From contig JAKMXF010000343.1 of assembly GCA_024704765.1 (NCBI GenBank), positions 845,151 to 909,150 of the forward strand: a stretch of DNA of 64,000 bases, written 5' to 3'. The stretch comes from Oopsacas minuta (taxonomy: Eukaryota; Animalia; Porifera). The notes below the pieces were generated by a model. It did not search any database and was not told the DNA's origin. It was given only the letters and a program-made list of their open reading frames with translations. The position numbers and the translations under genes are program-made. Shown here in pieces: positions 9,497-62,152 of this stretch. The stretch's first letter is position 1, and each line of letters opens with the position of its first letter.

Positions 9497-9900
9497 TACT
9501 CAACATATAGTTATAATTACAATGGTGTGTCTTGTAATTGATAATAGTCAATTAAAATTAGATTATTTAAAGCTGGGTTAAAAAGAAAATGTATATCTAT
9601 CTGCAGTTGAAATATTATATTATTAGTGTTGCGACCGCGAACAAGTTCATATAACTAATGTGGCCCTCGATTGAGAAAGGTTGGGGACCCCTGCCCTATA
9701 CAAGGTCACCTGTACAAAACGGGCACTTAAAACATTCCCCTTCGAATTTCTATTTTTTACAGTGTTCCCAAATTCCTGACCTCATTACTTTGAACTATTG
9801 CAAACCCATCATGACTGTCCAAAACCTCAAAATTCTCAATATTTCGGGATATTTTTTCTAATTTCTTAATACCAGAAGTTAGAATTTCTTAATGACACGA

Positions 9901-9927
9901 TGTATGTATGTATGTATGTGTGTATAT
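9901..9927. repeat. (TGTA)n/(TG)n microsatellite within the spacer between the hAT copies
   Basis: TGTATGTATGTATGTATGTGTGTATAT. Confidence 0.85.
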
Positions 9928-10235
9928 AATTCCAGAATTGAATGAAGAAACTGAAAACCCGCAGGGCTGATTTTGTATAAAGGAGATATAATTGAAATAT
10001 TGACCACCGAGCACTATCAAATGAAATTGTACCTTATGTTCATTTATGGCAGGGGTCCCCAACCTTTCTCAATCGAGGGCCACATTAGTTATATGAACTT
10101 GTTCGCGGTCGCAACACTAATAATATAATATTTCAACTGCAGATAGATATACATTTTCTTTTTAACCCAGCTTTAAATAATCTAATTTTAATTGACTATT
10201 ATCAATTACAATACACACCATTGTAATTATAACTA

Positions 10236-11604: not shown

Positions 11605-11617
11605 TATATGTTGAGTA

Positions 11618-13683
11618 TCATTTGGCGATCTGAGCCTGTTTACTTTTCACCAATTGGTCTATTTCTACAATCAAATTTGAAACACTGAGGCGAAGCAAAT
11701 CATGTAGGTGTCCATCAGTCAATCGTGACTGAGTTTTGGATTTCACGATTTTCATTCTGGAAAGGTTTGTTCGCAAATATAAGTACTGCCGAATAAAGCA
11801 GCCATTCGCATGGCAAGGGCACAAACATTCGGGAAAATACTTGAAGGCAGAGTATGATAAAATTGCAGTGCGAACAACTCTCTAAGTTTTTACCTAAGAT
11901 CGTTATTTGACTGCAGATCTATGATTTCTAATTGCAGATCCTCCCAAAGTCCCTCCACATCAACAATAAATGGATCTGCAAACATTAAAATATCCTTTGA
12001 GTATGCATAAAAATCTTCAAATCGTCGTTTGAACTGTTCTTTGAGTGATTCAATGGCAATCTTTGCCCATGATTCGGGAAATGGTATGGTAACTGATACA
12101 TCATTCTTGACAATTGGCATAGTTTAAAAAGCGTCAAATTGCTTGTTGAAAGTTCTTTTTCAAAAAGGCATAATTTTGAATCAAAGGATTTAACGTCATA
12201 AAACATTTGATTGACTAGCTTCCCTTTCCCCTGAAGCCGTAAGTTGAGATCATTAAGGTGCTGTGTGACATCCGCTAGAAATGCAAGCTGCCATACCCAT
12301 TTGCCATCAGACAGTTCACCTACTGGACGCCCCTTTGTAGTCATGAAATAATCTCTTTCTTTACGTAGCTCAAAGAATCGCTTCAAACTTTACCACGGCT
12401 AAGCCAACGTACTTCACTGTGGTAGATTACATCGTCATAATCTGTGTCTACCTCCTTCGAAAAACTCTGAAATTGACGATGGTTCAGAGCATGTGCACGG
12501 ATATAATTTACTGTTTTAAATACTGTCTTCATCACACAGTCCAAGTCAAGTGATTTTGCACAAAGCGCTTGTTGGTGAATGAGACAGTGAAGGGCGATGG
12601 GAAAATTCGTACCAACATCCTCCATATGATTATTTATTCGTCCAATTAATCCAATCTTCCTTCCAACCATACTTTTGGCCCCATCTGTTGTAATGGATGT
12701 GAGTTTCTTCCAATCTAGATTCAGGGATCGTAATGTTTCATGAAGTTTTTCGAAAACATCATGTCCTGTTGTAGTCCCTTTCAAGCTATGTAGAGCAGCT
12801 AATTCTTCAGTTATATGGAAGTCTTTGTCAATACCACGTATAAAAACTAGAAGTTGACTTGTATCACTCACATCACAACTTTCGTCTAACCCAATTGAAA
12901 AACGTTCAAATTTATCTTTAACGTTCAACAACTGTGATCGTAGATTGTCACTTATTTCTTCCATACGTCGTGTAACAATGCTAGCAGACAAACTTACAGC
13001 CTCGAACAAATTCATTTTGTCAGGACATATACAATCCACCACTTTGAGTAAGCATTTTTCAACATATTCGCCATCGCAAAACGGTTTACTACTTTGTGCA
13101 ATAATCTGTGACACATAATATGTCGCAAAAATAGTGGCAGAATCTTCATTCACTTTCTTTTTGAATAAGTTCATTTGAGATAATCGATTCCTTTTTAAAT
13201 ATTCGAGTTTGTCTAAGAAAGAAAATTGATAAAACATTGTACTTTAAACTAAAACACTCAGAGTAGAGAGGGAAAGTCGGTTATAATATATTGCACTCAG
13301 ACATTAAGTTACTACTTTACTATGTACTAATTCCACGCTAGAAGCGGTGCACATTTATCCGATATCTACTACAGGGGCGGTGCACACTGAAAGGTCAGAC
13401 AAGCATGAACAAAAACATTTGAACTGTTTCCGCTACCTCTGTACTGATAAAATGTGTTGTAATATTACCTGCACGTAGGTTTTCTGTAAATTGCTCGTAA
13501 TCTACTTTAAGCTTTGTATCGTAATGCTTACGAATGTTACGCTCTTTAAAAACCGAAATTGCCTCATTGCAAATCAAACAAGACACTTTTATCTCTATTT
13601 TGTATACAAAAATAAGTTTCTGTCCATCTATCTTTAAATCCTCGATGTTCTTCCTCGATTTTTCACTTTTTCGGGATTGACAT
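11618..13683 (-). pseudogene. Buster-type hAT transposase pseudogene (copy B)
   Basis: Same ORF fragments, intron and lesions as copy A. Confidence 0.92.
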
Positions 13684-14152
13684 TCTATATTTGTACTTTC
13701 TAAATTTTGTGGAATCAGAAAATTGATAGCAATTAGATATAAATATGAAATTGAAAGAACAGAATCCTTTCTAATAAGTTTTAGGCTTCTAATATGATAT
13801 TGTCAGCTTAAAAGCGTCGAAAACAAATAATTATTTCTATCAGTCAACTATAGATTAGCTTCCAACAAAAGTGTAAATGGACGAAGAGCTAAATATTTCA
13901 ATTGGCCAATATTCTTTGGCGGGACGCATATTAGGCTTTTGCGGGCTGCAGTTTGGGGACCCCTGGTATAGGGGGTGGCCGTTAGGCAGGTTTGGTAGTA
14001 TACACACATACCCACAGATTAAATGTGTTCAAATAGCTTTTGAGTCGTATTGCTTCAAGTTCTGTTTACCTAAATTTGTCCTCCGAAAAATGAATTTATG
14101 AATTTATGAATTTAGCGCATTATTTGGACTGTAGCATCTCTTTGATATACAT

Positions 14153-17100
14153 TAGGCCGGATCGAGAAAAGTATAAATCGTCGGTTCAACTTCTACCTAT
14201 GGGAATTGTTGCCTTTACCATTTTCTAGGAAAATGCGAGACTTAAATTTGAAAAATATTTCGATTTGACCCTTGCGGTTTTATATTTTTGCTGTGTCACT
14301 TTCGAAAATTGATTTTATATTGTCCGAATTTTCAAATTCCTTTGACTTAGCCCCTTTATATATATTATTTGGTAATAGTAAGTCGCATATTTGCTATTGA
14401 ATGGTATATTAATCGAATTTCTATGTCCAAGGATACTTAAGTTATCAAGATTTCTTTTGCATATTCTATCATACCCCAATATTATTACCCACCCCCCTTT
14501 TTTCCGATTATTTGAAAATTATTAGCTTTTTTATCTATCGTGGTATATGATTCAATTATGTTATATCAAGTATATTTAACATGCATAATCTTTCTTTGAC
14601 TCAAATGCGGGCATTTTTTCTCTTGATGTTAGGGTTGAAAGAATTAATCCATGTCTCGCATCTTCTCCTGTTACTGAACACGAACTTTTAGTGACTAATT
14701 GAATAGTTCTTTCAACAGCTTGTGTATGATATGGATATGCTTGAATTTCTAGTGGAGTACGTACACAATTAATTAGTACTTCTTTTGAGAGGTATCTTGT
14801 AAAAGCGGTTCTGTGATAAAAGAGGTTTCCCAATCAATCATATCCACATATGTTTCAGCAGTGAACCTAATTGAAGGAAGATTAAATGGGCGAATTTCAA
14901 TCGGTCTAAATGATGAACTGTTAATTCGGATATCTAAAATAGTCTTCACTGCCTTTTGTCTAATTTGTTCATCATTATCTGCAAGCATCGATAACAGGAG
15001 ATTTTCTGGATGACAAAAATATGAGTTTCTCTGTATCACATCGCAAATTACTTCTTGGTCAGACTCCGGTAGATCTGGTAGCAAAGATATCGCAAAAAAC
15101 ATATTTTTAGGTCCATCTGTGCAAATCGGGTTACTCTTGATTCTAAACCAAACTGGTGCATAATAATTGACAATAAAATTGACAAGTCGGGATAATTCAG
15201 GTGTGGGATGTATCGTAGAAATGTACGACCTAAGTAATCTGTTGACCAGTGTTGTCCATCTAGCATGATGTATAGGACCAGGTTGCATCGATGCCAGTTC
15301 AGATGAGCAAATACCAGTCTGAACTGCATGGCAGATATTATATAGATATTTCTGATCTTTATTTAAATTCTTGAGACTATCGTAATCAATAAGTTGAGTT
15401 TTACCGCATAAAGGATGATACGCTGCAATTGGTTTGCAAGTAAAATCACAATTAAGTTCTTTACCAATTACTCCTTTAAAAGAATTGGGTCCACTGGTTT
15501 TTCCATCTATTATTTGAAAGAGATGCCTCAATGGAAGTTCATTACCATGTAATTGGCAAATAAACCAGTGGAGTGGTTTTGCGAACTCTAGTTCAAGTAA
15601 TCTAATACACCCATTGTAGATTCCAGTGTTAACACGAGCTCCATCAGCTCCAACCGCCATTAAATTTGAATTACGCTCCCTGCAAAGATCAGTCAATTCC
15701 TTTGCTATATCTTTGGCTTTACCAGAACTTGGTGTTATATGGCCAACATACTGATTCTCCGGTTCAGATAAGACAGTATAATGTTCTTCATTTGCAGTAT
15801 CCTGATGCAAATGTCCATCTTCTCTTTCTACCAGTACTCGAGTTTTGATCTTTACGGCCATCAAAATATGTTGCAGATATATCATTGATAGTTTCGTGAG
15901 CCTCATTAGCCAATTCCTTTCTCACAGAGAATCTAGATCTATGGAGTTTGTTTCTATCAATAATTTGACTATCTTCTTCCTGTGTGATACTACCGTAATC
16001 TTGCAGTACTGCGTTAGCTATAGCTGCGCCTGCCCGATCGCTAATTTGATATCTATCACACATTATGGCTAAATTTCGTAATTGATTATGATTACGTGTA
16101 TACTTGTGAGTATTAGATATGCTCGAGTCAAAAGATTCAAACTCTTCAAAGTCACATTCTATAAATTCTTGCGAAGGTTGAACTGCATGTAATCTCTTCA
16201 TTTCCCTTTCTTCTCTTTCATATTGTGCCTCTTTTCTTTTTTGTTTAACAAAATTTTTAGAGGTTGTCATGCAGTCCAAGCTGGATATAAATAATTTTCG
16301 AGCGTTTCGCTGATCAAAGAGAAATGGCCACTCACGGCGTGGTATCTTTTTATCGAGAGAGCAAAAACATTTACCTTCCTGAATTAGGCATTTGCAACTT
16401 GAGACATCGAACAAGACATTGAATTCGGAAATAATAGGCTGTATACGGTCAGGTTGTTGCTTGTTTTGGATACTTTTTCCATAGTATTTAGCTCTCTCAA
16501 TAATATCAGAATTGATGTACTGTTTTATTTTGAGTTCTGATATAGTGGGTATGGAAGCCAAATTATAGATACGCACTAATACTTCAGTTAGTTCTTTCGC
16601 TATATCATCTCTAGTTGATTTAGAATCTTCATTTCTAAGCATTCTATAATGATTGTATAGATCTAGTTTTGTTGGAATTTGATTTTCTGGAATGGGTCCT
16701 GGATAGCCAAAAATAGGATGAAATACTTTACTACGCGTGTTTTCTGCCATTTCAAAAATAAATATATTTTAGGAATATGATCACTCAATAATATGAATGA
16801 TTTGATCGAGCATTGATATAGATACTATAATTGACCATAAATTCCATGCTAGATAAATGGTAACTAAGTTAGAACAAGAGATAAGGAATGTTGGCAAAAT
16901 TTCTTTGTGGTAACCTATTGAGGAATTTGGATCTAGATAAAGAAATATACTAAGTTTGGTGATTATATAGCTAGTTTTACTAAGAATATAGAATTTTCAA
17001 ATAATCGGAAAAAAGGGGGGTAATAATATTAGGGTATGATAGAATATGCAAAAGAAATCTTGATAACTTAAGTATCCTTGGACATAGAAATTCGATTAAT

Positions 17101-17355
17101 ATACCATTCAATAGCAAATATGCGACTTACTATTACCAAATAATATATATAAAGGGGCTAAGTCAAAGGAATTTGAAAATTCGGACAATATAAAATCAAT
17201 TTTCGAAAGTGACACAGCAAAAATATAAAACCGCAAGGGTCAAATCGAAATATTTTTCAAATTTAAGTCTCGCATTTTCCTAGAAAATGGTAAAGGCAAC
17301 TTTTCCCATAGGTAGAAGTTGAACCGACGATTTATACTTTTCTCGATCCGGCCTA
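14153..17355 (-). mobile_element. hATm-like element with long TIRs, copy 1
   Basis: TAGG...CCTA termini, perfect 8-bp TSD ATATACAT (14145-14152, 17356-17363), near-identical TIRs of about 365 bp. The hATm subfamily name is from recalled termini and protein motifs, not a search. Confidence 0.85.
14576..16750 (-). pseudogene. hATm-like transposase, two frameshifts
   Basis: ORFs of 320, 377 and 85 aa in register: YFDGRKD, VGADGARVNTG, ICQLHGNELPLRH, HARW, YPYHTQAVER. Confidence 0.8.
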
Positions 17356-17977
17356 ATATACATATACATATTGAATATAGTAAGATGTGCATATAGAATA
17401 TACAGATAGCTATATACAAGATACTAATAACCCAAATTTAGCAAAGTCCCAGATCCTCATAGAGCAACACAGATATATATTCTTGACAACATATGGAAGG
17501 GGTTACAACGATTGAGTTATATAACACTTGAGAAAAGATGTATACCGCATAGTAACAAGGAAAATACTAATCCATAAATAATTTGTCCATCACTGAACTT
17601 AAAATGAATTCATTAGACACATTATTTCCCAAGTTTCATCAATTTATAGGTTTGATGTAGATTTAGCTAAAATTATTCTTCTGGTGTATTATTGACCCAG
17701 GGTCATTGGTAGGGGCGTCACAATGATCACAATTGTGACAAGACCCGGGTCATAAAGGGTCCAGTGTCAGCTTAATTCATAACGAATTTCAAAATAATGT
17801 GGCCAAACTGTGCGGAATGTCGTGCATACCAATCCAGTCATTCAAACCTCTCCTTAGTTATAAACTGACAATTTGACGGAGACAAGGACTAATCAAGCAG
17901 TACGTCCTGCCTTAACTCATTCAACCTAGACCTTGCATTTTCATCTTGGATTGCTGTCGCATAAAACTTGGTAACTA

Positions 17978-25858: not shown

Positions 25859-27989
25859 TACTTACCACAAAATGCCTATTCTGATTTGATAATAATTTTC
25901 ATGAATATCGAGTCATAATTGTATATTAATAAAAATGTGTCATCCTTGCCCTCTACTCTAACTCGAGAAACAAATAACTTTTGTATTGCAATTTTCAAAA
26001 TTTAGTATAAAAGTAACTATAGATCATTTCTCATAATCACTTATACATAGATGAAAAGTATAATATTCAATGTTTGATTTGTATAGTTTAATAAATAAAT
26101 GCTTACTAAACACATATTTTGATAGATTCATGAAATTATTTAGCATAGAATAGTTTCAACATTTGTTGCTCCACAACTATGTAATACATTTATTAGGCGA
26201 AACTACTTAGCAGTATCGGATAACGTATCCTTACTCTAAAATCGATAAGTCACTGTTAGGCCTTACGTATGGTAGGCTGTTTATAATTCCTCATATAATA
26301 TCTTATCCAACTATATAATACACAAGAGGGCCGCTGGGGCAGGTAGGTCAGGTGCGGCGCTCGCCTCACTAAGAAGTATCAATTCCATTGATACAGATGA
26401 TGAAATCTGAGAATTAAGTACCGAACATTACTCCAAGCTAAAGCTAGAATTTTTAGTTTCAACGACGCTGCACTATGAATTTGCTTGTCTCGGGGAATCC
26501 CTAGAAATATAAAATGTAACTAGCAAAAGAATAATACAAGTTTGAGTAGCGGTTAGTTAACATGTTTAATATTGTCGCCAGTGGAGTGTGGTCTAAAAGG
26601 GTGGGTCCATATTAGGAAAACTTTTCCTAAGAAACACTGCTAAAAACAGCCTCAAAAGAAATAGCCATCAATTGAACCCCTTGATCGGCTCAAAAGATTC
26701 ACTTGTTTTCGGAACGACAAGGTATCCTCATCTGGGTTTTTGGAAATTGTCATTTCAATTATTGCTATGATTTGCAATTTTTCAAATTTTTACCTTAGAG
26801 CTTCAGGAATTGATATTTACCTTCATATACTCATTCAATGATAATTCTTGCGTCAAGTATGCGTTAACTGCTACATTTCTGAATTTTTCCACAAGTGATT
26901 GGTCCAACGGTATTCAACTATTGGGGATTTTAAAGTCAGCACAAACATAAATCGTCCTAATTCTTCTAACCAGCTATATCTCGAAATCACAGCTTCTAAT
27001 TGTTGCAATTCCAATATTTTAAATTATATCACATATAAAGTTCCAGATTTATGATTCATTTTCGGTAATTGCATTAAGCTAAAAGTATTTCTATGAGTAT
27101 CTTTTAACTAATAAAATTCATGTTGCGTAATACATAATGAATTGATAATGATAACACTATACAGTTGAACTTGGATATATATACTTCGGTTAATACGTAT
27201 AATTTACTAATTCCCAACGGGTACGTCTTATCCGGGTTCCAAAGTAATATTGAAGATTCACCAAAGGAATTTCAATATCAGTGAAATATTTATTAAAGTG
27301 ATGTACTCATTCATTAATTCAATGTAAATAATAAGATTTCATGAAATGAAAATGTATAGGTACTCTTCCATAATTTCAAATTCATTGAAGAGAATAATAA
27401 ACGTGTAAATAGGAAACTAAATAACTTATCAGTATCATACAGTGGAATAAATAAGATGATAAACCATTATCTTAGATACAAACTAAAAAATATCATAAGA
27501 TAGCAATATTGATATATTCAAGCAACCTAGGTAAGTCACTTAAGATATTAAATCTTAGTGAGTAACATAATTAGTGAATAACACTTAAGTTCGAAATTAA
27601 TACTTAAATATTAAATCGAAATTAACCTCTGAGTGAATACGGCGGATCTAGATAGAATATTTTTCATTTTATGGATATGATAGAGGTACCAATTTTCGAA
27701 AAAGAATAGTTAAAAGATAAGCTAAGAAAATTGGAACATGTCAAAAATAGTTCGGACATGCCCTATACACGATTCGCTAAGCAAAGAATTGCCAACTTAA
27801 TATCAGGCCATTGATTACACTGGTCAACACGTAATTTGGTGCCTTTGGAGTTTGACTTTTTAGGTATATTTTGTACGTATATGAGAAATATTGCCCTCAG
27901 TTTTGATCAATCAGCTCATATTTTTGAAATATATCCGCGATTGACTTAAACTAATTAATTACTATAATATATACACATACGAATATATA

Positions 27990-29361
27990 CAGTGCGTTCG
28001 GAAATTATTGGCAGTAAATACTATTTTCATTATCCTTTATAAATATTCAAAACAACCTTATTTACGACGTCTAAGTTATAGCAACATATAATATACTCGA
28101 AATATAATGTATAGATCCACTGACATTCTAATTTTCTGCCTTATCTATCCCAAATGATCTTTGACATTAAATATGTGCTTATTATTTTTGTTCACACATT
28201 TTAGACCCATATTTTCCGACTTTCACTAACAATATTTTTCCGCAATTTTGGTATGAAGGCTCAGGAAAAGAATAGAATCAGGATAAAGGAACTCTTTGAT
28301 GCTGGGATAACAAAAGCGACTGAAATATCGAGACGACTAGCTATACCAGAGCGGACAGTATATCGTGTTTTGAAGTCTATTTCTGACAAAAAGAGCTTGA
28401 CTCATAAGAAAGGAGCAGGTCGACCTCAAATATTGCACAAGTCTGATAGGAATAGGATTATGGCACTCGTTCAACACAATCCAAGGATCACTCTGAATGA
28501 ATGTCGAGCAAAATTGAGTACTCCAGTTGCCAAAAGCACACTATCAGAGGAAATGAAGAGGAGAGGCTTACAATATCGCCAGGCAGTAAGAATTCCAGCC
28601 TTGTCACAACTCCATATTACTAAACGAATGGAATGGTGTAAACGAATGAGGGGTCAGAACTGGTCTAAAGTGTTCTTTACTGATGAATGCTCCATATGGA
28701 TGAATTCAGGCAAGATACATGTATGGACAAAGAAAGGACAGCCCATTAACCTGCCAACTTTCAAACATCCATCGAAGCTCCATATTTGGGGTGGTATTTC
28801 GGTAATGGGCAAAACAAACCTCAAAGTTTTCACCGAAAACTTCAACCAGGAACGATACAAAACAGTTCTAAATGAGTGTCTTATACAAGAAGCTAATGCT
28901 TTATACGGAAATAAATGGGTATTGCAGGAAGATAACAGTCCTATACATACAGGAAATGCAGCAAAGGCTTGGAAACAGGAATTTGTCCCACATCAGATCG
29001 ACTGGCCCTCCAATAGCCCCGATCTGAACCCAATTGAAAATCTTTGGGCTGTACTAAAGAAGAGACTCCTCAAAAAGAGATTTACTAGCTCAAATGAGTT
29101 GAAAGAAGCTATTTTGGAGATATGGAACACATTTGACCCTGAATTTTTAAAGCCATTTTGTCTATCAATGGACAAAAGAATTCGGTTATGCATCAAAGGT
29201 GGAGGTAAGAAGATAAATTATTAGCTATATGTTAGTTACTCATGTATATTCTATTTGAGAGAGTACCGAATTATTAGAAATCATATGATTTTGATCATTC
29301 TTAACATAGATATTGCATGGAACCAAATCAAATTCACTGCCAATAATTTCCGAACGCACTG
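27990..29361 (+). mobile_element. Full-length Tc1 element, apparently autonomous
   Basis: Perfect 26-bp TIR CAGTGCGTTCGGAAATTATTGGCAGT, TA at 27988-27989 and 29362-29363, 1372 bp. Confidence 0.97.
28253..29224 (+). CDS. Tc1 transposase, intact, DD34E, 323 aa
   Basis: Uninterrupted ORF: HTH, GAGRP linker, VFFTDECS, LQEDNSPIH, WPSNSPDLNPIENLW, with 34 residues between the second D and E. Confidence 0.96.
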   Translation: MKAQEKNRIRIKELFDAGITKATEISRRLAIPERTVYRVLKSISDKKSLTHKKGAGRPQILHKSDRNRIMALVQHNPRITLNECRAKLSTPVAKSTLSEEMKRRGLQYRQAVRIPALSQLHITKRMEWCKRMRGQNWSKVFFTDECSIWMNSGKIHVWTKKGQPINLPTFKHPSKLHIWGGISVMGKTNLKVFTENFNQERYKTVLNECLIQEANALYGNKWVLQEDNSPIHTGNAAKAWKQEFVPHQIDWPSNSPDLNPIENLWAVLKKRLLKKRFTSSNELKEAILEIWNTFDPEFLKPFCLSMDKRIRLCIKGGGKKINY

Positions 29362-45900: not shown

Positions 45901-48299
45901 ATTATTAATGGATGTATCCAAGGATATTTTCATACAAAATATCAAAGAATTGCCATAAGATTGTCATCAGGGTCCAGCGACATTAATATGGCTGGTAATT
46001 CAATAAATTAGAAAGTGGTAGAAATAGAGGAAGTAAAGTTCGTGTTTCACAGTTATGGTAGTGACCATGGGTGGGTGACATATTTTTGACCATTATTCAC
46101 CCATAACTTGACAACCTTCAATGTTATGGCCAAATCAACTTAAACAATTATAGTATATACCTGACTTCCTATACCCTGACATACATTATATACGATAGCT
46201 TTAAAGAATATTGTAAAGTCATCAAACGCCGTTCGCAGTTTCGACTATTCGCGGGTGAAATTTTGTGCCTTATTTAGTTGTTCGCGACTCATTCCCCTAG
46301 AATATTTGCCGTTTTCAATACACACATCAGCCCTTCAATAAAAAATTGAACAGTTTGTATCCTTGGAATACATGTATATTCATCTCAAGAATATAACCAT
46401 CAGAGATATAATAAGGAAATGAATTTAACTCTGAAATGCTATTTTTATCATAAGAAATTTTTTCTATTTTGAGCGGCAACACCCTCAGGTGCCAGGGTAA
46501 TAAATTTGAAACAATAAGTACGTTATCAATTTACTCATTAATTATTTAGTTTCAACATTGGTGAATTTATTTGACATAATTAATAAGTAAGCAGGTAGAT
46601 GACGATATTCTGGGCCTGGAAACACTATGTATAGACTATGTGTATTGTCAAATATCAATATCACATTCATTCGGGCCAAAAAGGCATCATTTACTTTTAT
46701 CGCGACAAATAGAATTTCCATGTGTAAATATTGAGGTAATCAAACGATCCCTGGTCCAAAATTTTTCGAAACCATAAAGCCTCTGTGTATAGAATGCTAT
46801 ACATAAACATTAATGTAAAGAATGCTATACATAAACATTAAGGTTCATGAATTAAAGAAATATAGATATAACAAACCTTTGTCGTTTATAAAAGGGACAG
46901 CCCCTGCAGTTGAATGAATGATGTTGCTAACATCCATAATAGCGTATGTTTTGGCGAATAAATTAGAATGTGATCTAGACAAATGTCGATAAAAGATAGT
47001 AAACAACATCACTATATGGATTCATGGAGTATATAAGTATAAATATAAACTAAAACAAAGTACAGTAGGCTCGGATAAGTCGTACCACTTAGAGAGTCAT
47101 GAAAAATCAGGACGTAAAACCAAAAACGTCTTATCCGAATATTATTCCAATACAAGTAATACAAACTTGATAATCCGTTGTGGGAAAAGTACGTACTAAC
47201 CGAGAGTATGTTTTAAGTTGAGTAAATATTCATCGAGTTCAACTGGATTATAAATAAATGTGAAGCATCGTTTGTAACATTTTGGACAAATGGCATCGAA
47301 AAGAAGTATAATAATATTACATTTTGGCGCCACATATAGTGATACTTTTAAAGTGCCACTTTGGGGCAAATTATATACGTAACTCATTCAGTTTGATAAG
47401 ATTATTTAGAGGATCAATTTTTGTGTAGCTAGACCCAGCTAGCCTACCTTTGTCAACCAAGGGGGAAATAGATAAGGTTGGGAGAAATTTGAGAATGGAT
47501 TTGAGTTCTGTACAATTATAGATCGGATATGTAATTAGCTCATAATATATTTAAAGAGCAAAATGTGACTAAAATATCTAGGTAGAAAACTTTCATGGCT
47601 TTAGTCAGGATATTGTTAACTAACTGTCATATAGTTCTCTAATGTATATTATATACGGAATTTCGGTACAATTGCAGAATCTTACACCCCCCAACTTTTT
47701 TAATGTGGTCAAAAATCCCTATATGCACCGTTCAAGAACTCGTTGAGAGAAGTTGATAGAGCTAAAGAACTCCAAAATCGGATTAAAATCGACAAAGTTA
47801 CGAAAAATTTACTCCCTAAGCCAAATCCTATGGGGAAAATTGGGTACAATTGCAGAATCTTACACCCCCCAACTTTTTTAATGTGGTCAAAAATCCCTAT
47901 ATGCATCGTTCAAGAACTCGTTGAGAGAAGTTGATAGAGCTAAAGAAATCCAAAATCAGATTAAAATTGACAAAGTTACGAAAAATTTACTCCCTAAGCC
48001 AAATCCTATGGGGAAAATTGTATTACTCACTATAGTCAAATTGTATTCATTTATACATTACAATTACCATAGGAATGCTCATACTGTTGATATTGCGGTT
48101 ATACACGCTTGTTACTCTACTCTTTCATGCTCATTTGTTTGCTATTCAGTGTATTTCACTGCAGGTAATTCTTGTTACTTTAAAGGAAAGCTGGTTACTA
48201 CATAATTCTGTCTGCAACACTAAATATACAATGCAACATTTCATTTCATATTATGCTTGCAATTAAATTGCATCCTGTATGTGAAGTCGTTCAAACGTA

Positions 48300-48525
48300 C
48301 CATACTTGCCAACTGTTACGTTGGTTGGCGGGACACCACGATTACTCGCCCCGAATATGCGTTGACTGCCAATGAGGCTAATGTCCAGCCAAAACTTGAC
48401 AAAACCCTTAATTGTCCCTATATTTTGTAGTCCAGTCTAATACAAATATGCTGCATCCGACGATGTCCCACTCAATTAGCCCCTTCTGTCCCACATTTTA
48501 TCTTCACTCATGTTGGCAAGTATGG
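48300..48525. mobile_element. 226-bp MITE-like segment carried inside Merlin (second copy 51719-51944)
   Basis: 14-bp perfect inverted repeat CCATACTTGCCAAC...GTTGGCAAGTATGG. No TSD discernible. Confidence 0.45.
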
Positions 48526-49642
48526 GGTTGACACTTGCCCTGTAATACCCCGATAATGTTTAGCCAGTGCAGAGCAAAAGTATCAAGTTTTGGATAGCTA
48601 ATATAATACAGGTGGTATTTCTTGCCTGAACCAAATGTGTGGGGTCAAATGTCTATTATAGATAAACTTGAGCAAGTGTAGTCAGTTTGTAACTGCAACA
48701 CATTCTCATTATAACGAAGTGTTCTGGACTGGTACGGAACCCGGTTACATTTCGTGATCTGCAGAATTAGGATATATGCGGAGTAAGATCAATACTTTCA
48801 AGCTGGAGGGGGTTTGTGAATCACTTTGTTATAGAGTGAGTTTAGCCATATAATTGATGTTAGCTTATAACGAAAGTTTACAGTACAGGACCTTATGAGG
48901 TGGTGTAACAGGTTCGGCGGTCGCTCCGAACCAATAATTAGCAATGTATATTAATGGTGAGATGTGATGAATGCTGCAACAGTAAGTTTGTGATTCCTGC
49001 GTTCCTACAATACCAGTATTATTAGACAGTCAACTCCGCTTAATTAGGACAAATTTAGGTAATCGAGTGAAAATTAATAACTCACTCAAGAGGATTTCTC
49101 TTGATTTAGGAAATTGTAATAAGCTACGTACTAGGTACATCGCCTAATTTGGGATAAATATGGCCAAATCAAATTCTATTTACTACTTATTGTTATCGGA
49201 AGACAATATAACGATCCGAATGAGAAATTTATTTGATTATGGGATTATTTACATAAATTTTCTTTACAACCAACAATCACCTAAAATATGGTAAATATGC
49301 TTGAGATTAAACATGAGAAGTGTGGTAAAAATATGTGGTTTCAGATGTAATTTCTATTGTATAGATTTGTTGATGTGTTCATAGTTCTACCAGTATCTAT
49401 TACATACGAAATTTAGTATAATTGGAATTCTGTTTGTCAGGTTACTGAGTTGAACAACAAATGGTTTAGGAAAGTGGCATGCAAACCACATGTAATTATT
49501 ACCTATACTTAAAGAATACATTCCAAACGATCATACAATGTATTTCGATCAATCTTAAGTCAAGTATAAAAGGAATATCAGGGAAATAGAACTAACAAAT
49601 CCTAATTATTCGAGTTGTGATATTTCTATTATAAAACCCTTA

Positions 49643-50586
49643 ATGGCAGTTGCTCCATCGTTTCAACCTCTGCTGGTTCCTACAATATTTCCAGTTATTG
49701 AAGAAATTACCTTAAAACAACTTTTTCGTAATATCACTATTGATAAAGATACTTGTATAGCATGGCTCAAAAGTAACGGACTTTTAGTTACCGGGATGAT
49801 GTGCAAATGCGGTAGAATTATGAGACCCGGAACATTTTCAGGTTTTGAGGATGGAAAGGGGTGGAGGTGCCCGGAAAAGTCATGCAAGAAATTCGCTTCG
49901 ATGAGGATTGCTCATTCTTTGAAGGTGCTCATATACCCTTAACTGAGTTGGTAGAATTTCTCTATTTCTGGGCCGATAATCTGCAAACTACTGCCTTTTT
50001 AAACAAGAATCTAGGGTGGGGAGAGCATACTATAACAGACTGGAAGAACTTCCTCAGAGACCTATGTGTTGAGGAATTTTTAGTCAATCCTCAACCAATT
50101 GGAGGGCCTGGGCATATTGTAGAAATAGATGAATCAAAGTTTGGACATCGAAAGTATTCATGAGCTCGTATGCTATCAGGTCAATGGGTATTTGGAGGAA
50201 TAGATAGAGAGACAAAAGATATCTTTATGATACCTGTTCAAGACAGGTCGGCTGCAACATTAGTCCCTCTCATCCAGAGATATATTCTTCCGGGCACTAC
50301 CATACTTTCTGACGAATGGGCATCGTATAATTCTATCCCCGCTGCAAGTTTTCAGCATCTCACCGTCAACCATAGTCTCAATTTTGTTGACCCTACTACA
50401 GGTGTACATACGCAAACAGTTGAGAGTACATGGGGTGGTGCGAAGAAACGGCTGAGGAATTGCATGACTACTAACCCTATACTTTTAGATACCCACTTAT
50501 CTGAAGTTTGTTGGCAGAAGAAATATGGAGAAGCTAGTTTCTCCAACCTTATCATGGAAATAAGGAAACAATATCCAGTTGTCTAA
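49643..50586 (+). pseudogene. Merlin transposase pseudogene, unit 1
   Basis: MMCKCG..WRCPEKSC zinc finger, VEIDESKF, WVFGGIDR, ILSDEWASY, VNHS..FVDP..VHTQTVESTW. One frameshift near 49905 and a TGA at 50161. Confidence 0.93.
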
Positions 50587-53057
50587 CAGTACCATACTTC
50601 TGCTTTGGTGTTTCTTTTGTAGCACTACTTGTTATATTGTAGATTTGTAGTTAAAGTAGTGCATAGAAAGCTCAATACTAATTAGTTACTTCAAATATAA
50701 CGACCACCCATAGTATTATATCCAGCTATGGGGGTGTCATATATTTAATATTCTGTCCACTATCATAAGTAGAAACCCATGAAAACTTTGTTCCAACATT
50801 ACTAACGCACCTGGAGAGAAGCTGGATCATAACTATGCGATTAAATAGTACATGAATTGTTTCTAACATTGACACGAACACAAACGAACGATCAAAATTG
50901 GTTTGCCTTGACCGGAGTAATACAAATTAAACTACCATTTTAGGAAACAGAATATATGCAAATATATGTGTCATATCGGGAATTCCATTAACTAGGTCGA
51001 ATTATCGAGGTGCCACTGTATAAAATATGAAATGAAATGTTGCATTGTATATTTAGTGTTGCAAACAGAATTATGTAATAACCAGCTTTCCTTTAAAGTA
51101 ACAAGAATTACCTGCAGTGAAATACACTGAATAACAAACAAATGAACATGAAAGAGTAGAGTAACACGCGTGTATAACCGCAATATCAACAGTATGCGCA
51201 TTCCTATGGTAATTGTAATGTATAAATCAATACAATTTGACCATAGTGAGTAATACAATTTTCGGTACAATTGCAGAATCTTGCACTCCCAACTTTTTTA
51301 ATGTGGTCAAAAATCCCTATATGCACCGTTCAAGAACTCGTTGAGAGAAGTTGATAGAGCTAAAGAAATCCAAAATCAGATTAAAATTGACAAAGTTACG
51401 AAAAATTTACTCCCTAAGCCAAATCCTATGGGGAAAATTGTATACTCACTATAGTCAAATTGTATTCATTTATACATTACAATTACCATAGGAATGCTCA
51501 TACTGTTGATATTGCGGTTATATACGCTTGTTACTCTACTCTTTCATGCTCATTTGTTTGCTATTCAGTGTATTTCACTGCAGGTAATTCTTGTTACTTT
51601 AAAGGAAAGCTGGTTATTACATAATTCTGTCTACAATACTAAATATACAATGCAACATTTCATTTCATATTATGCTTGCAATTAAATTGCATCCTGTATA
51701 TGAAGTCGTTCAAACGTACCATACTTGCCAACTGTTACGTTGGTTGGCGGGACACCACGATTACTCGCCCCGAATATGTGTTGACTGCCAATGAGGCTAA
51801 TGTCTAGCCAAAACTTGACAAAACCCTTAATTACCCCTCTATTTTGTAGTCCAGTCTAATACAAATATGCTGCATCCGACGATGTCCCGCTCAATTAGTC
51901 CCTTCTGTCCCACATTTTATCTTCACTCATGTTGGCAAGTATGGGGTTGACACTTGCCCTGTAATACCCCGATAATGTTTAGCCAGTGCAGAGCAAAAGT
52001 ATCAAGTTTTGGATAGCTAATATAATACAGGTGGTATTTCTGCCTGAACCAAATGTGTGGGGTCAAATGTCTATTATAGATAAACTTGAGCAAGTGTAGT
52101 CAGTTTGTAACTGCAACACATTCTCATTATAACGAAGTGTTCTGGACTGGTACGGAACCCGGTTACATTTCGTGATCTGCAGCATTAGGATATATGCGGA
52201 GTAAGATCAATACTTTCAAGCTGGAGGGGGTTTGTGAATCACTTTGTTATAGAGTGAGTTTAGCCATATAATTGATGTTAGCTTATAACGAAAGTTTACA
52301 GTACAGGACCTTATGAGGTGGTGTAACAGGTTCGGCGGTCGCTCCGAACCAATAATTAGCAATGTATATTAATGGTGAGATGTGATGAATGCTGCAACAG
52401 TAAGTTTGTGATTCCTGCGTTCCTACAATACCAGTATTATTAGACAGTCAACTCCGCTTAATTAGGACAAATTTAGGTAATCGAGTGAAAATTAATAACT
52501 CACTCAAGAGGATTTCTCTTGATTTAGGAAATTGTAATAAGCTACGTACTAGGTACATCGCCTAATTTGGGATAAATATGGCCAAATCAAATTCTATTTA
52601 CTACTTATTGTTATCGGAAGACAATATAACGATCCGAATGAGAAATTTATTTGATTATGGGATTATTTACATAAATTTTCTTTACAACCAACAATCACCT
52701 AAAATATGGTAAATATGCTTGAGATTAAACATGAGAAGTGTGGTAAAAATGTGTGGTTTCAGATGCAATTTTCTATTGTATAGATTTGTTGATGTGTTCA
52801 TAGTTATACCAGTATCTATTACATACAAAATTTAGTATAATTGGAATTCTGTTTGTCTGGTTACTGAGTTGAACAACAAATGGTTTAGGAAAGTGGCATG
52901 CAAACCACATGTAATTATTACCTATCATTAAAGAATACATTAAACGATCATACAATGCATTTCGATCAATCTTAAGTCAAGTACAAAAGGAATATCAGGG
53001 AAATATAACTAACAAATTCTAATTATTCGAGTTGTGATTTCTATAATAGAATCCATA

Positions 53058-53994
53058 ATGGCAGTTGCTCCATCGTTTCAACCTCTGCTGGTTCCTACAA
53101 TATTTTCAGTTATTGAAGAAATTACCTTAATACAACTTTTCGCAATATCACTATTGATGAAGATACTTGCATAGCATGGCTCAAAAGTAACGGACTTTTA
53201 GCTACAGGGATGATGTGCAAATGCGGTAGAATTATGCGACCAGGAACATTTTCAGGTATTGCAGATGGAAAGGGATGGAGGTGCCCGGAAAAGTCATGCA
53301 AGAAATTCGCTTCGATGAGGATTGCTCATTCTTTGAAGGTGCTCATATACCCTTAACTGAGTTGGTAGAATTTCTCTATTTCTGGGCCGATAATCTGCAA
53401 ACTACTGCCTTTTTACACAAGAATCTAGGGTGGGGAGAGCATACTATAACTGACTGGAAGAACTTCCTCAGAGACCTATGTGTTGAGGAATTTTTAGTCA
53501 ATCCTCAACCAATTGGAGGGCCTGGGCATATTGTAGAAATAGATGAATCAAAGTTTGTACATCGAAAGTATTCAGGAGCTCGTATGCTATCAGGTCAATG
53601 GGTATTTGGAGGAATAGATTGAGAGACAAAAGTTATGGTACCTGTTCAAGACAGGTCGGCTGCAACATTAGTCCCTTTCATCCAAAGATATATTCTTCCG
53701 GGCACTACCATACTTTCTGACGAATGGGCATCGTATAATTCTATCCCCGCTGCAAGTTTTCAGCATCTCACCGCCAACCATAGTCTCAATTTTGTTGACC
53801 CTACTACAGGTGTACATACGCAAACAGTTGAGAGTACATGGGGTGATGCGAAGAAACGGCTGAGGAATTGCATGACTACTAACCCTATACTTTTAGATAC
53901 CCACTTATCTGAAGTTTGTTGGCAGAAGAAATATGGAGAAGCTAGTTTCTCCAACCTTATCATGGAAATAAGGAAACAATATCCAGTTGTCTAA
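53058..53994 (+). pseudogene. Merlin transposase pseudogene, unit 2
   Basis: Same motifs; shares the frameshift of unit 1, lacks its stop, and has private lesions near 53110 and 53620-53640. Confidence 0.92.
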
Positions 53995-56053
53995 CAGTAC
54001 CATACTTCTGCTTTGGTGTTTCTTTTTTAGCAGTACTTGTTATATTATAGATTTGTAGTTAAAGTAGTGTATAGAAGCTCAATACTAATTAGTTACTCCA
54101 AATATAACTACTACCCATAGTAATATATCCAGCCATGGGGTGTCATATATTTAATATTCTGCCCACTATCATAAGTAGAAACCCATGAAAACTTTGTTCC
54201 AACATTACTAACGCACCTGGAGAGAAGCTGGATCATAACTATACGATTAAATAGTACATGAATTGTTTCTAACATTGATACGAACACAAACGAACGATCA
54301 AAATTGGTTTGCCTTGGCCTGAGTAATACAAATTAAACTACCATTTTAGGAAACAGAATATATGCAAATATATGTGTCATATCGGGAATTCGATTAACTA
54401 GGTCGAATTGTCGAGGTGCCATAGTATAAAATATGAAATGAAATGTTGCATTGTATATTTAGTGTTGTAGACAGAATTATGTAATAACCAGCTTTCCTTT
54501 AAAGTAACAAGAATTACCTGCAGTGAAATACACTGAATAGCAAACAAATGAACATGAAAGAATAGAGTAACAAGCGTGTATAACCGCAATATCAACAGTA
54601 TGCGCATTCCTATGGTAATTGTAATGTATAAATCAACACAATTTTCCCCATAGGATTTGGCTTAGGGAGTAAATTTTTGTAACTTTGTCAATTTTAATCC
54701 GATTTTGGAGTTCTTTAGCTCTATCAACTTCTCTCAACGAGTTCTTGAACGGTGCATATAGGGATTTTTGGCCACATTAAAAAAGTTGGGGGGTGTAAGA
54801 TTCTGCAATTGTACCGGAATTTCAAATATTCGCAGTAGCCAGGATATATAACTGTACATTTAGTAGTTTTGAAATAATTATGCTCGGTTAGTGTATAACT
54901 ATATATGTTTGTATGTGCAGAATTGGTTGAAGAAACTGGAGGACCCCAGGGCTGATTTTTGGCAAACAGGGGAATTCTGGGCCTGGGTCGGAGAAGTTCG
55001 AGTCTTGGACGAAAATTCAAACCAATGACGAAATTACGACGTTATTGTCACCATTTTGGATTTTGCTCAAGAAAATTGAAAAAATTGGTTTAGACTATAT
55101 GTAATTGTGGTCAATAAGAGCAATATTATCAAAAAAATAAAATCTCATACTTGAAACAAGATTTACATGCAAAGACTAGTTTTAAGGGTAATTCCGTCCA
55201 TACTAAAATAGTTAGAATTGCAAATACCCGAAATAGTTCAACTGTTATGGTAATGGCATAATATATTACCTATTTACGTATTTCGAACCTTTCTCTAGAA
55301 ATGGGGGAGATACCAAAACATCATAGTTTAAATGTTAGTTCAATAGTCGAATAATTCTCATTTATGCATTCACACCAATCCTAAAAATGATTCTAGATGC
55401 AAAATAGGAACGGTTTTATCAACATAATTGGATGAATATTCTTGAGGATATCTGAATATAAGTGACCTTAGGGCTGGGAACGCAAAGAAACAATGTTCTG
55501 AGCTGTCTTGTCTACGATTCTTACTATAGTCAAACCTCTGTAAAGCGAACAGACTCGGGCCAGAGGTTTTTGTTCACTCTATCTAGGTGCCATTAAGTAG
55601 AGGTTCCAATAAATGATTGGGCATAGACTACTAAAGATAAGACCTGATCACTTCTTCGGACCAGGGATAAGAGGAAGTGGATATATTTTGATGGGAAAAT
55701 CTTGAATCGCAGATAATAAGAAAGTAGCATATTTTCACCCGAATAAATGATTTGATATTTATGACATTTGCGAAAAATTTTCAGATCGAGGTGACGCCAT
55801 TTGTTAGCGTAATTGGCAAATATATACTTAAAACAGCTCCAACTTGAAACCATGTGGAACATTAATTATTAATCTATGTTCAACATATTGAAACACCACA
55901 GGGCTGGATTTGGTTAACCGCCGCTATATCCGTAAACTGCAGTAGGAAAAGTATTTTCAGTTAACAGAACAGCATCATTTCAAACAATTTATTCATAATT
56001 CCTAAGGCTAAAGAGGTAGAATATCTAAATACCCCAATTCTGGAATATTATGA

Positions 56054-60115: not shown

Positions 60116-60341
60116 CACATTCAATCCGACAGGCTTATGTAAATTTTAGTAACTATACTCGTTAAAGTTTCACTAAGCATTCCACTTGTAATGTAACATG
60201 TAGTAGATATTTATTTACTAACTAGTATATTAATGTAACCGTACACAGGTCGCTTACATTCATATTCGAAATACTCGTCTTGGAAAGAATACATTAAGTG
60301 TGAAACTGTAGGCGATTTAATAGTATCCATATTTGAAACAT

Positions 60342-62025
60342 TAGGCCGGATCGAGAAAAGTATAAATCGTCGGTTCAACTTCTACCTAAGGGAAAAGTTG
60401 CCATTACGATTTTCTAGGAAAATGTGAGACTTAAATTTGAAAATATTTCGATTTGATCCTTGCGGTTTATATTTTTGCTGTGTCACTTTCGCAAAATTGA
60501 TTTTATATTGTCCGAATTTTCAAATTCCTTTGACTTAGCCCCTTTATATATATTATTTGGTAATAGTAAGTCGCATATTTGCTATTGAATGGTATATTAA
60601 TCGAATTTCTATGTCCAAGGATACTCAAGTTATCAAGATTATTTTTTGCATATTCTATCATACCCTAATAACATTACCCACCCCCCCTTTATTTCCGATT
60701 ATTTGAAAATTACTAGCCTTTTTGTCTATCGTAGTATATGATTCAATTATGTTATATCAAGTATATTTAACATGCATAATCTTTCTTTGACTCAAATGCG
60801 GGCATTTTTTCTCTTGATGTTAGGGTTGAAAGAATTAATCCATGTCTCGCATCTTCTCCTGTTACTGAACACAAACTTTTAGTGACTAATTGAATAGTTC
60901 TTTCAACAGCTTGTGTATAGAATGGATATGGTGGAATTTCTAGTGGCGCACGTACACAATTAATTAGTACTTCTTTTGAGAGATATCTTGTAAGGAGGTT
61001 CTGTGACAAAAAAAGGTTTCCAAATCAATCATATCCACATATGTTTCAGCAGTGAACCTTATTGAAAGAAGATTAAATGGGCGAATTTCAATCCGTCTAA
61101 ATGATGAACTGTTAATTCGGATATCTAAAATAATCTTCACAGCCTTTTGTCTAATTTGTTCATCATTATCTGCAAGCATCGATAACAGGAGATTTTCTGG
61201 ATGACAAAAATATGAGTTTCTCTGTATCACATCGCAAATTACTTCTTGGTCAGACTCCGATAGATCTCGCAGCAAAGATATCGTAAAAAACATATTTTTA
61301 GGTCCATCTGTGCAAATCGTGTTACTCTTGATTCTAAACCATACTGGTACATAATAATTGACAACAAAATTGATAATTCGGGATAATTCAGGTGTAGGAT
61401 GTATCGTAGAAATGTACGACCAGGTTGCATCGATGCCAGTTCAGATGAGCAAATTCCAGTCTGAACTGCATGACAGATATTATATAGATATTTCTGATCT
61501 TATTTAAATTCTTGAGAATATCGCAATCAATAAATTGAGTTTTACCGCAAAAAAGATGATACGCTGCAATTGGTTTGCAAGTAAAATCACAATTAAGTTC
61601 TTTACCAATTACTCCTTTAAAAGAATTGGGTCCGCTGGTTTTCCATCTATTATTTGAAAGAGATGCCTCAATGGAAGTTCATTACCATGTAATTGGCAAA
61701 TAAACCAGTGGAGTGGTTTTGCGAACTCTAGTTCAAGTAATCTAATACGCCCATTGTAGATTCCAGTGTTAACACGAACTCCATCAGCTCCAACCGCCAT
61801 TTAATTTGAACTACACTCTCTGCAAAGATCAGTCAACTCCCTTGCTATATCTTTGGCTTTACCAGAACTTGGTGTTATATGGCCAACATCCTAATTCCCC
61901 GGTTCAGATAAAACAGTATAATGTTCTTCATTGCAGTATCCTGATGCAAATGTCCATCTTCTCTTTCTACCAGTACTCGAGTTTTGATCTTTACGGCCAT
62001 CAAAATATATTGCAGATATATCATT
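60342..62025 (-). mobile_element. hATm-like element copy 2 (one TIR plus 3' two-thirds of the transposase), interrupted by a MULE
   Basis: Colinear with 14153 to about 15886 of copy 1; left flank TGAAACAT; 49-bp deletion at GACC microhomology near 61420; homology stops at 62025. Confidence 0.9.
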
Positions 62026-62152
62026 GGGAAGTCCGACAAAACGTTCCACGACAAAATGTTCCACGACAAAATGTTCCAGACAAAACGTTCCACGACAAAA
62101 TGTTCCACGACAAAATGTTCCACGACAAAACGTTCCACAACATTTCGCTCCA
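62026..62152 (+). mobile_element. Left terminus of a Mutator/MULE-like element with 15-bp subterminal tandem repeats
   Basis: Starts GGGAAGTC exactly at the break in hATm homology, then 7 copies of CGACAAAA(T/C)GTTCCA (one 14 bp) at 62034-62137 and one degenerate copy. Confidence 0.7.

Follow-up and report, generated by a model that had tools for sequence, protein, structure and literature searches.

Two Merlin transposons in the sponge Oopsacas minuta carry chimeric terminal repeats that point to probable nesting followed by a small inversion

Introduction

The closest described counterparts of the locus reported here are Galileo transposons. At Galileo inversions in Drosophila buzzatii, terminal inverted repeats (TIRs) resemble each other within a copy but have diverged from those of other copies, and chimeras with exchanged target-site duplications (TSDs) are found after ectopic recombination (PMC2775673), while in D. 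mojavensis chimeric long-TIR Galileo elements lack matching TSDs (PMC3573991). For Merlin, the superfamily concerned here, TIRs of 24–462 bp with a terminal 5'-GG have been described (PMC8101967).

We analysed a window of 64,000 nucleotides from Oopsacas minuta (contig JAKMXF010000343.1, positions 845,151 to 909,150), in which two Merlin units and a detached TIR stub occupy positions 47657–54823. The locus is an ordinary kind of transposon rearrangement, cleanly resolved, and calls for no new mechanism. We read it as a base-resolved case of long TIRs making DNA transposons recombine with one another: a nested insertion would have made a quasi-palindrome, and a small inversion would then have swapped termini between the two copies.

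Results

From left to right the locus consists of GGAATTTC, a 178-bp TIR stub, unit 1 (47843–51263), unit 2 (complete; 51264–54815) and GGAATTTC again. The coordinates and sequences that an earlier note had given for it hold to the base. We refer to the two TIR and body lineages found at the locus as alpha and beta; its parts are as follows.

47657–47664, plus strand: left copy of the outer 8-bp TSD, GGAATTTC, assigned to the resident beta insertion; identical to the 8-mer at 54816–54823
47665–47842, plus strand: stub, TIR 1–178, which reads as part of beta's split left TIR
47835–47842: first copy of the internal TSD, GAAAATTG, closing the stub and equal to TIR bases 171–178
47843–48252, plus strand: left TIR of unit 1 (alpha), complete, 410 bp
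48253–51023, plus strand: body of unit 1 (alpha lineage, C39-like), with rare alleles common to copy C39
51024–51263, minus strand: right TIR of unit 1, truncated (TIR 410 to 171), chimeric
51256–51263: inverted TSD copy, CAATTTTC, at the end of the right TIR of unit 1
51264–51671, plus strand: left TIR of unit 2, complete to the tip, chimeric
51672–54429, plus strand: body of unit 2 (beta lineage, like copies C330 and C44a)
54430–54815, minus strand: right TIR of unit 2 (beta), 386 bp, with an intact tip
54816–54823, plus strand: right copy of the outer TSD, GGAATTTC, directly outside the element tip
51064–51633, no strand assigned: putative inverted segment, delimited by haplotype switches and holding the tip-to-171 junction 51263/51264

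The stub is 98% identical to TIR 1–178, and element tips (GGTACAATTGCAG...) begin exactly at 47843 and 51264. The right TIR of unit 2 is short because it has lost 23 bp between direct repeats of AAATTGT (TIR 176–198) and a further 1 bp elsewhere.

The element is a true Merlin, as the earlier note had named it, by a domain-level transposase match, its TIRs and its TSDs. Pfam PF12762 (DDE_Tnp_IS1595) matched the transposase fragments of unit 1 (E = 9e-17) and unit 2 (E = 2.5e-14) and the intact 329-aa open reading frame of copy C44a (E = 1.7e-16); the transposase is about 306 aa from the first methionine, with stop-to-stop lengths of 334, 329 and 323 aa in copies C39, C44a and C325. Both genes at the locus are broken, that of unit 1 (49643–50586) by the loss of 1 bp at 49909/49910 and by a TGA stop of its own at 50161–50163, and that of unit 2 (53058–53994) by 1-bp deletions near 53141 and 53323, a stop near 53620 and a 6-bp deletion near 53632; the deletions at 49909/49910 and near 53323 are the same shared lesion. 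The 410-bp TIR starts 5'-GG, and at least 77 Merlin termini are present in the 61-Mb genome, where GGTACAATTGCAG was matched 56 times exactly and 20 times with one mismatch. With a TSD criterion of 8 or 9 bp, and with flank windows of 63 bp only for 23 of the tips, 8-bp TSDs were exact at 10 same-locus pairs (nine other loci and the outer pair here) and matched at 7 of 8 positions at two more; 6 of the 18 pairs examined had no TSD match. As assembled, copy C39 is surrounded by a 339-bp inverted duplication of its flank.

Across the 77 tips, exact reverse-complement 8-mer flank pairs comprised the 10 ordinary same-locus TSDs and, beyond these, the inner pair alone, which is also the sole pair whose two tips point in one direction. 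Because the inner pair is unique in this set, the structure of the locus exceeds chance. The insertion into TIR bases 171–178 with an 8-bp TSD that had been proposed is thus borne out, with GAAAATTG and the inverted CAATTTTC each lying directly outside a tip, and the inverted copies and same-facing tips bear out the proposed need for an inversion as well. The tips at 47843 and 51264 were the only two of the 77 to adjoin Merlin-internal sequence; with no second TIR-in-TIR insertion in this set, the suggested self-targeting hotspot at TIR 171–178 is not supported. Partial TIRs in copies C37 (TIR 1–166), C39 (1–130) and C360 (1–285) were rejected as further insertions, their ends being single-N scaffold joins, and the insertions within TIRs of other copies (C244 near 315–325, C333 near 334–336, C199 near both 301 and 210) had no match to the Merlin reference. 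A microhomology join and abortive gap repair were likewise rejected for the two junctions at the locus, both of which keep complete tips and the complete 8-mer. No exact partner for TSDs exchanged between dispersed TSD-less Merlin copies was found among the 77 tips.

At TIR 106 and 116 the stub and the far right TIR read C and G, respectively, and both internal left TIRs read A at each; the C and G variants had been taken as specific to right ends. We aligned 40 TIRs, including 18 left and 13 right TIRs from other loci. Position 106 was polymorphic at both ends, with C in 4 of the 18 left and 5 of the 13 right TIRs, and at 116 G was the consensus at both ends, A being found in none of the 31 other TIRs and thus private to 47843–48252 and 51264–51549. 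No position within TIR 1–410 separated left from right ends among these 18 and 13 TIRs. On this alignment the variants mark two sublineages and not left versus right ends. The beta haplotype (106C/116G/206G/237G/288T) runs across the stub, 51146–51263 and the far right TIR at the sites that each covers, and the alpha haplotype (106A/116A/206C/237T/288C) across both internal left TIRs. TIR 372 groups the other way, both TIRs of unit 1 having G and both of unit 2 having A, and the rare 370T is common to the inner right TIR of unit 1 and the right TIR of C39, whose right end also agrees with unit 1 at the neighbouring body alleles.

The two central TIRs are therefore chimeric. The right TIR of unit 1 is alpha-like on its inner side, to about 51064 (TIR 370), and beta-like on its outer side, 51146–51263 (TIR 288–171); the left TIR of unit 2 is alpha-like over 51264–51549 (TIR 1–288) and beta-like over 51633–51671 (TIR 372–410). 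The earlier proposal that the stub and 51024–51263 were once a single right TIR thus stands for TIR 171–288 and fails for the alpha-like inner part; with the switches central, moreover, the split TIR reads as the left TIR of the element of unit 2, and not as a right TIR. Within elements, TIRs were concordant across the family, with 39 shared non-consensus sites in 8 elements against 0.7 expected from TIRs of different elements. An inverted TSD together with seemingly 'end-specific' variants is open to misreading; here the variants track sublineages in which TIR pairs would evolve in concert.

Units 1 and 2 differ at 119 alignment columns; of 36 informative sites, 35 place unit 1 with C39 and unit 2 with C330 and C44a. 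By these affinities the units belong to different sublineages and are not sister copies, which speaks against the insertion of an element into 'its own' TIR as first described. The family is mosaic: the right half of unit 1 shares rare alleles with C39 and then with C111, C299 and C99, and in copy C99b a beta-like right TIR adjoins a unit-1-like body. Because of this mosaicism, the linkage of TIR and body lineages is imperfect in this Merlin family.

Arms at 51024–51252 and 51443–51671 (229 nt, 190 nt apart) are 96% complementary, and the 648 nt of 51024–51671 are predicted to fold as a single long hairpin (−245 kcal/mol, z = −37).

We infer the order of events and the mechanism of recombination from this anatomy. 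Probably, an alpha copy nested in the left TIR of beta, and recombination between the resulting arms then flipped about 0.4–0.57 kb. The beta copy would have inserted first, at GGAATTTC. The alpha copy would then have entered beta's left 410-bp TIR in the same orientation, an 8-bp staggered cut at TIR 171–178 duplicating GAAAATTG, so that the right TIR of alpha came to abut the 240-bp remainder of beta's left TIR, the two pointing opposite ways. The result would have been a 96–97% identical inverted repeat with a 170-bp spacer, a hairpin-prone quasi-palindrome. Recombination between the arms, either as a crossover within one chromatid or through template switching in replication, with exchange at TIR 289–371, would have flipped 0.4–0.57 kb, turning the second TSD copy into CAATTTTC and leaving unit 1 with a right TIR that stops at 171 and unit 2 with a complete, chimeric left end; 51264–51549 would originally have been part of alpha's right TIR. 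Patchy gene conversion between the tandem bodies may have followed.

The left crossover most likely lay within 51064–51146 and the right within 51549–51633, with 404–569 bp flipped. The reciprocal-switch sites (206, 237 and 288 versus 372), 370T and the body alleles fit an exchange at TIR 289–371, with few sites and in a mosaic family; since the 240-bp arms offer just four informative sites of the '2+2' kind (206, 237 and 288 versus 372), the crossover interval rests on one site and the rare 370T. Unit 1 is also beta-like at the TIR-adjacent positions 415 and 421, for which a small inversion would need an extra conversion tract.

Discussion

The first alternative to nesting followed by a small flip is an assembly artefact, in which a plain nested insertion had the segment between its 240-bp inverted arms assembled in the wrong orientation. 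Either orientation gives the same 171-to-tip junction, on one strand or the other, so that the choice depends solely on linkage through the arms. The published assembly is a hybrid one (SPAdes with k to 99, SSPACE, Pilon and GapFiller; 365 scaffolds, 61 Mb) built from different, non-clonal animals, in which other Merlin TIRs stop at single-N scaffold joins, and the same 64-kb window holds a perfect 2372-nt inverted repeat at 7138–13976. Against this, the window is without any N, and the arms differ every 10–70 bp. As the longest identical stretch (TIR 301–369) is 69 bp, shorter than the final k of 99, k-mers joining the private 300T to 288T and 370T must have been in the reads; we infer that the chimeric arm probably existed as a molecule and that the assembled orientation is real, and hold an artefact to be unlikely.

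Nor do we favour the larger inversion originally suggested, which we consider distinctly improbable. Here the right TIR of one copy would have received the other copy in inverted orientation, and the block of about 7 kb at 47843–54815 would have flipped through the outermost TIRs (47843–48252 and 54430–54815), with a crossover near TIR 289–371. This history is topologically equivalent to the observed order and fits all six informative TIR sites (106, 116, 206, 237, 288 and 372) equally well. It would, however, require a C39-like body to have been paired with C44a-like TIRs and vice versa, whereas at the locus each outer TIR agrees with the body beside it and the central arms alone are recombinant. 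Inverted repeats with close spacing, such as the 170-bp spacer here, recombine far more often than those 6.3 kb apart, which further disfavours a 7-kb flip. With the lineage switches in the central and not the outer TIR copies, an inversion of about 0.4–0.57 kb is most likely, and not one of 7 kb.

That transposase itself made the arrangement, by sister-chromatid or hybrid-element insertion, reversed-ends transposition, inverted re-ligation at the tips or an autointegration circle, is very improbable: each of the two inner junctions joins a tip exactly to its target, with an 8-bp duplication, and several such schemes give the TIR order on paper, but the sister-chromatid, hybrid-element, two-left-ends and autointegration-circle schemes each fail on body orientation, flanks or the non-sister units (sister-copy models need duplicate units; two left ends predict that the right flank recurs inverted on the left, where the flanks differ and the TSD is direct; hybrid insertion predicts a unit 1 body inverted relative to unit 2, where the bodies are direct repeats), and breakpoints at the tips would not yield chimeric arms with switches 120–200 bp inside.

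If nesting and a small flip did occur, the interrupted resident (unit 2) would have regained a complete, chimeric left end, and the incoming copy would have been crippled. Tentatively, TIR-to-TIR recombination after nesting might, if common, be a regular terminus swap behind TSD-less chimeras, mosaicism and TIR concordance; it would then be a source of the TSD-less chimeric Merlin copies (the 6 of 18 pairs), of mosaic lineages and of the concordance of TIRs within elements. For annotation, TSD-less or chimeric Merlin copies in O. minuta may thus stem from recombination and not from odd transposition, and assembly segments between inverted transposon copies need read-level checks.

Set against the Merlin superfamily, which is related to bacterial IS1016/IS1595, the transposase, TIR length, GG start and 8-bp TSD all agree, with no difference at family level; both copies at the locus have broken transposase genes. 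Alternative transposition of P and Ac/Ds elements resembles the locus in its exact tip-to-target junctions and reordered transposon ends, but predicts identical copies, flank duplication or deletion and an inverted body, none of which was seen here. As with the Galileo chimeras of D. mojavensis (PMC3573991), unit 2 taken alone is a complete element that combines two TIR lineages and has flanks that do not match (CAATTTTC and GGAATTTC), and six other Merlin pairs in the genome are also without TSDs. The Galileo inversions of D. buzzatii (PMC2775673) share with this locus homologous copies in opposite orientation, an exchanged or inverted TSD and TIRs that are alike within an element, and probably also chimeric recombinants with a mappable crossover interval. 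They differ in that the recombining repeats here would be two TIRs set tip-to-middle by a nested insertion, and in that about 0.5 kb of transposon DNA would have been flipped, with no host sequence inverted.

Structure and identity of the composite

The sequence at 47657–54823 contains two direct units of 3.4–3.55 kb with inverted arms of about 410 nt, as revealed by repeat finding, and a 178-nt unit that occurs three times in direct order, at 47665, 47843 and 51264 (the repeat-finding listing showed them with the register shifted). When the whole assembly was searched by pattern, the four tips (outermost element ends) fell at exactly the positions read from the sequence. The arrangement described in an earlier note, a TIR stub followed by two full units, was confirmed, with correct coordinates, by repeats, sequence reading and the assembly-wide search.

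Features of the composite, by window position
47657–47664 and 54816–54823: outer TSD, GGAATTTC (sequence reading)
47665–47842: stub, TIR bases 1–178, ending in GAAAATTG (sequence reading)
47843–51263: unit 1, starting at tip GGTACAATTGCAG and ending in CAATTTTC, the complement of TIR 171–178
51264–54815: unit 2, with the second tip at 51264

We infer that unit 2 has two complete tips, a chimeric left TIR and non-matching flanks (CAATTTTC and GGAATTTC), that the right end of unit 1 lacks its outer 170 bp, and that the 7.15-kb composite as a whole keeps two tips and a matching TSD. The far right TIR has lost 23 bp between AAATTGT direct repeats (window 54638–54660; TIR 176–198), sequence that adjoined the 171–178 target site.

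The window (scaffold C343:845151–909150) belongs to an assembly of 61.46 Mb in 365 scaffolds with ~35% GC; the published Oopsacas minuta assembly has 365 scaffolds, about 61 Mb and 36% GC (PMC10280926). Both units encode an IS1595-type DDE transposase (Pfam DDE_Tnp_IS1595, E = 9e-17 and 2.5e-14 on fragments), and the same family is matched by an intact ORF of 329 aa in another copy (E = 1.7e-16). The TIRs are 410 bp long with a 5′ GG start, the 8-bp TSDs are exact at 10 loci (this one counted) with a 7/8 match at 2 more, and at least 77 tips of the family are present in the genome. Such a transposase, GG-starting TIRs and 8-bp TSDs are the defining features of Merlin (PMC8101967), of which the element is an ordinary member. 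The transposase is broken in both units, which have a 1-bp deletion in common (about 49909 and 53323); a TGA at 50161–50163 is private to unit 1, and unit 2 has another 1-bp deletion, one stop and a 6-bp deletion. Frames are open in copies C39, C44a and C325, named by scaffold, with 334, 329 and 323 codons between stops.

Probable insertion of one lineage into the TIR of another

We aligned 40 TIRs, including the five pieces here and 18 left and 13 right TIRs from other copies. Haplotype beta (106C, 116G, 206G, 237G, 288T) was found in the stub, the outer part of the truncated right TIR of unit 1 and the far right TIR, and haplotype alpha (106A, 116A, 206C, 237T, 288C) in both internal left TIRs. 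The variants at 106 and 116 had been read as specific to right ends, which the alignment refutes: TIR 106 varies between A and C at left ends (14 A, 4 C) and right ends (8 A, 5 C) alike, 116G is the consensus on both (18/18 left, 12/13 right), 116A is confined to the internal left TIRs of this locus, and no position within TIR 1–410 separates left from right among the 40. The left and right TIRs of one element instead have lineage-specific variants in common (39 shared non-consensus sites in 8 complete elements), compared with a mean of 0.7 and a maximum of 3 when a left TIR was paired with the right TIR of another element. This comparison implies that the 410-bp TIRs undergo concerted evolution within elements.

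If TIRs are concordant within each element, the alpha element ends in the tips at 47843 and 51264; exactly these two abut the split beta TIR, at its bases 178 and 171 respectively. Such a pattern is the signature that an alpha copy would leave by integrating into a beta TIR through an 8-bp staggered cut. Alignment of units 1 and 2 shows 119 differing columns; where C39 and C330/C44a have different states, unit 1 was C39-like and unit 2 C330/C44a-like at 35 sites, with the opposite at 1, and C39 has alpha-type TIR states while C330/C44a have 237G/288T. These counts indicate that the units did not arise by duplication of a single element, and leave self-insertion into an ‘own’ TIR unsupported.

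Merlin sequence abutted none of the other 73 tips (0/73), and no self-targeting hotspot was found. Other short TIR pieces stop at single-N scaffold joins rather than at insertions; partial TIRs of this kind lie at C37:35458–35623, C39:16244–16373 and C360:86976–87259 (loci L031, L032 and L059), and the assembly repeatedly broke inside the Merlin repeat. Sequences of 1.3–3.2 kb without a match to the Merlin reference are inserted in Merlin TIRs at L050 (C244), L058 (C333) and L048–L049 (C199), at TIR positions of about 315–325, 334–336, 301–302 and 210–213.

A 570-bp run is identical between the units (48765–49333 versus 52183–52751), and unit 1 is beta-like at positions 415/421. Together with the shared private 1-bp frameshift, these states suggest that gene conversion later occurred between the two tandem units.

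Extent of the proposed inversion

Plain nested insertion would give the stub, a complete alpha element and then beta from TIR 171 on; what we observed differs only in the orientation of a piece carrying the alpha right tip and the beta TIR 171 end. The main remaining doubt is whether this piece was wrongly oriented in assembly, as the junction of base 171 with the tip reads the same on either strand, so that orientation hangs on linkage through the arms, and the published assembly was a hybrid SPAdes build (k up to 99) with SSPACE scaffolding followed by Pilon and GapFiller, from Illumina and PacBio DNA of different animals. Against this, there is no N anywhere in the window, and the longest identity shared by the arms is 69 bases (TIR 301–369), so the reads must have contained k-mers that link the private 300T with 288T on one side and with 370T on the other.

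Two single inversions yield the observed order, a small flip between the central arms (the truncated right TIR of unit 1 and the left TIR of unit 2) or a 7-kb flip between the outermost TIRs, as the earlier note had proposed. Unit 1 is alpha-like at its left tip, in its body and in its inner right TIR, where it has a rare 370T and adjacent alleles in common only with the right end of C39, before turning beta-like at 288, 237 and 206. In unit 2 the alpha states run from the left tip as far as 288; beyond that, through its body and right TIR, the unit is beta-like, with 372A matching that right TIR. Each outer TIR thus agrees with the body next to it, and the chimerism appears to be reciprocal between the two central arms, which disfavours the 7-kb flip. 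The switch maps to the interval from TIR 289 to 369/371 (window 51064–51146 and 51549–51633), giving a flipped piece of 404–569 bp, and we consider that these sequence states favour the small flip; a size of 7 kb is unsupported. The earlier interpretation was partly right overall, failing on own-TIR insertion, right-end variants, inversion size and hotspot.

For the small flip, an alpha right TIR beside the beta remainder would have made the pre-flip junction a 240-bp inverted repeat with a 170-bp spacer, and recombination between the central arms would have inverted the piece. Inverted repeats that lie close together are highly prone to intrachromatid recombination and replication template switching. 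The present 648-nt region folds as a single long hairpin (−245 kcal/mol, z = −37).

Under sister-chromatid or hybrid-element insertion, the unit 1 body would be inverted or the units would be sister copies, and neither was seen; a two-left-ends reaction predicts an inverted right-flank duplicate on the left, where the flanks are unrelated except for the direct TSD, and tip cutting with re-ligation would not make switches inside the arms.

Other copies and repeats

On scaffold C39, the full-length Merlin copy has no TSD; instead, 339 bp of its left flank are duplicated perfectly in inverted orientation (G000:C39:23896–24234 and 27781–28119; L002:1162–1500 and L007). The flank is part of a different repeat family, which runs without interruption at four other loci, and the duplication is either real (an inverted flank duplication or TIR extension) or an assembly palindrome. 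Matching TSDs are missing from six apparent Merlin end pairs (C325, C330, C44 at 537557–541144, C301, C337 and C332 at 144272–147816), and no exchanged TSD partners for them were found among the 77 tips. The C330 copy has, immediately beyond its left tip (L018, G000:C330:302363–302716), a fragment of ~130 bp that looks by eye as if it codes for a diverged Merlin-like transposase motif; a partial TIR (bases 7–231) comes next. Two tips 21.6 kb apart, at C363:177167 and 198761, have identical outside 20-bp flanks, which suggests segmental or assembly duplication.

The window also holds a 2372-nt perfect inverted repeat (7138–9509 and 11605–13976; spacer 2095 nt) and copies of another repeat family at 14132–17363 and 60321–62026 that are 89–99% identical, the first with an internal 349-nt inverted repeat (14145–14493 and 17015–17363).

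Comparison with known systems

The likeness of TIRs within a copy and their divergence between copies, seen here in Merlin, is the same property that diagnosed recombinant Galileo elements in Drosophila (PMC2775673). Recombination between inverted Galileo copies, with inverted or exchanged TSDs and chimeric copies, is documented (PMC2775673), as are chimeric TSD-less copies (PMC3573991). By analogy, the rearrangement described here would be the known footprint of recombining inverted transposon copies, with inverted or exchanged TSDs and chimeric copies. It is a well-resolved new instance of a kind already known, the same as in Galileo, here on a miniature scale and set off by TIR-in-TIR nesting.
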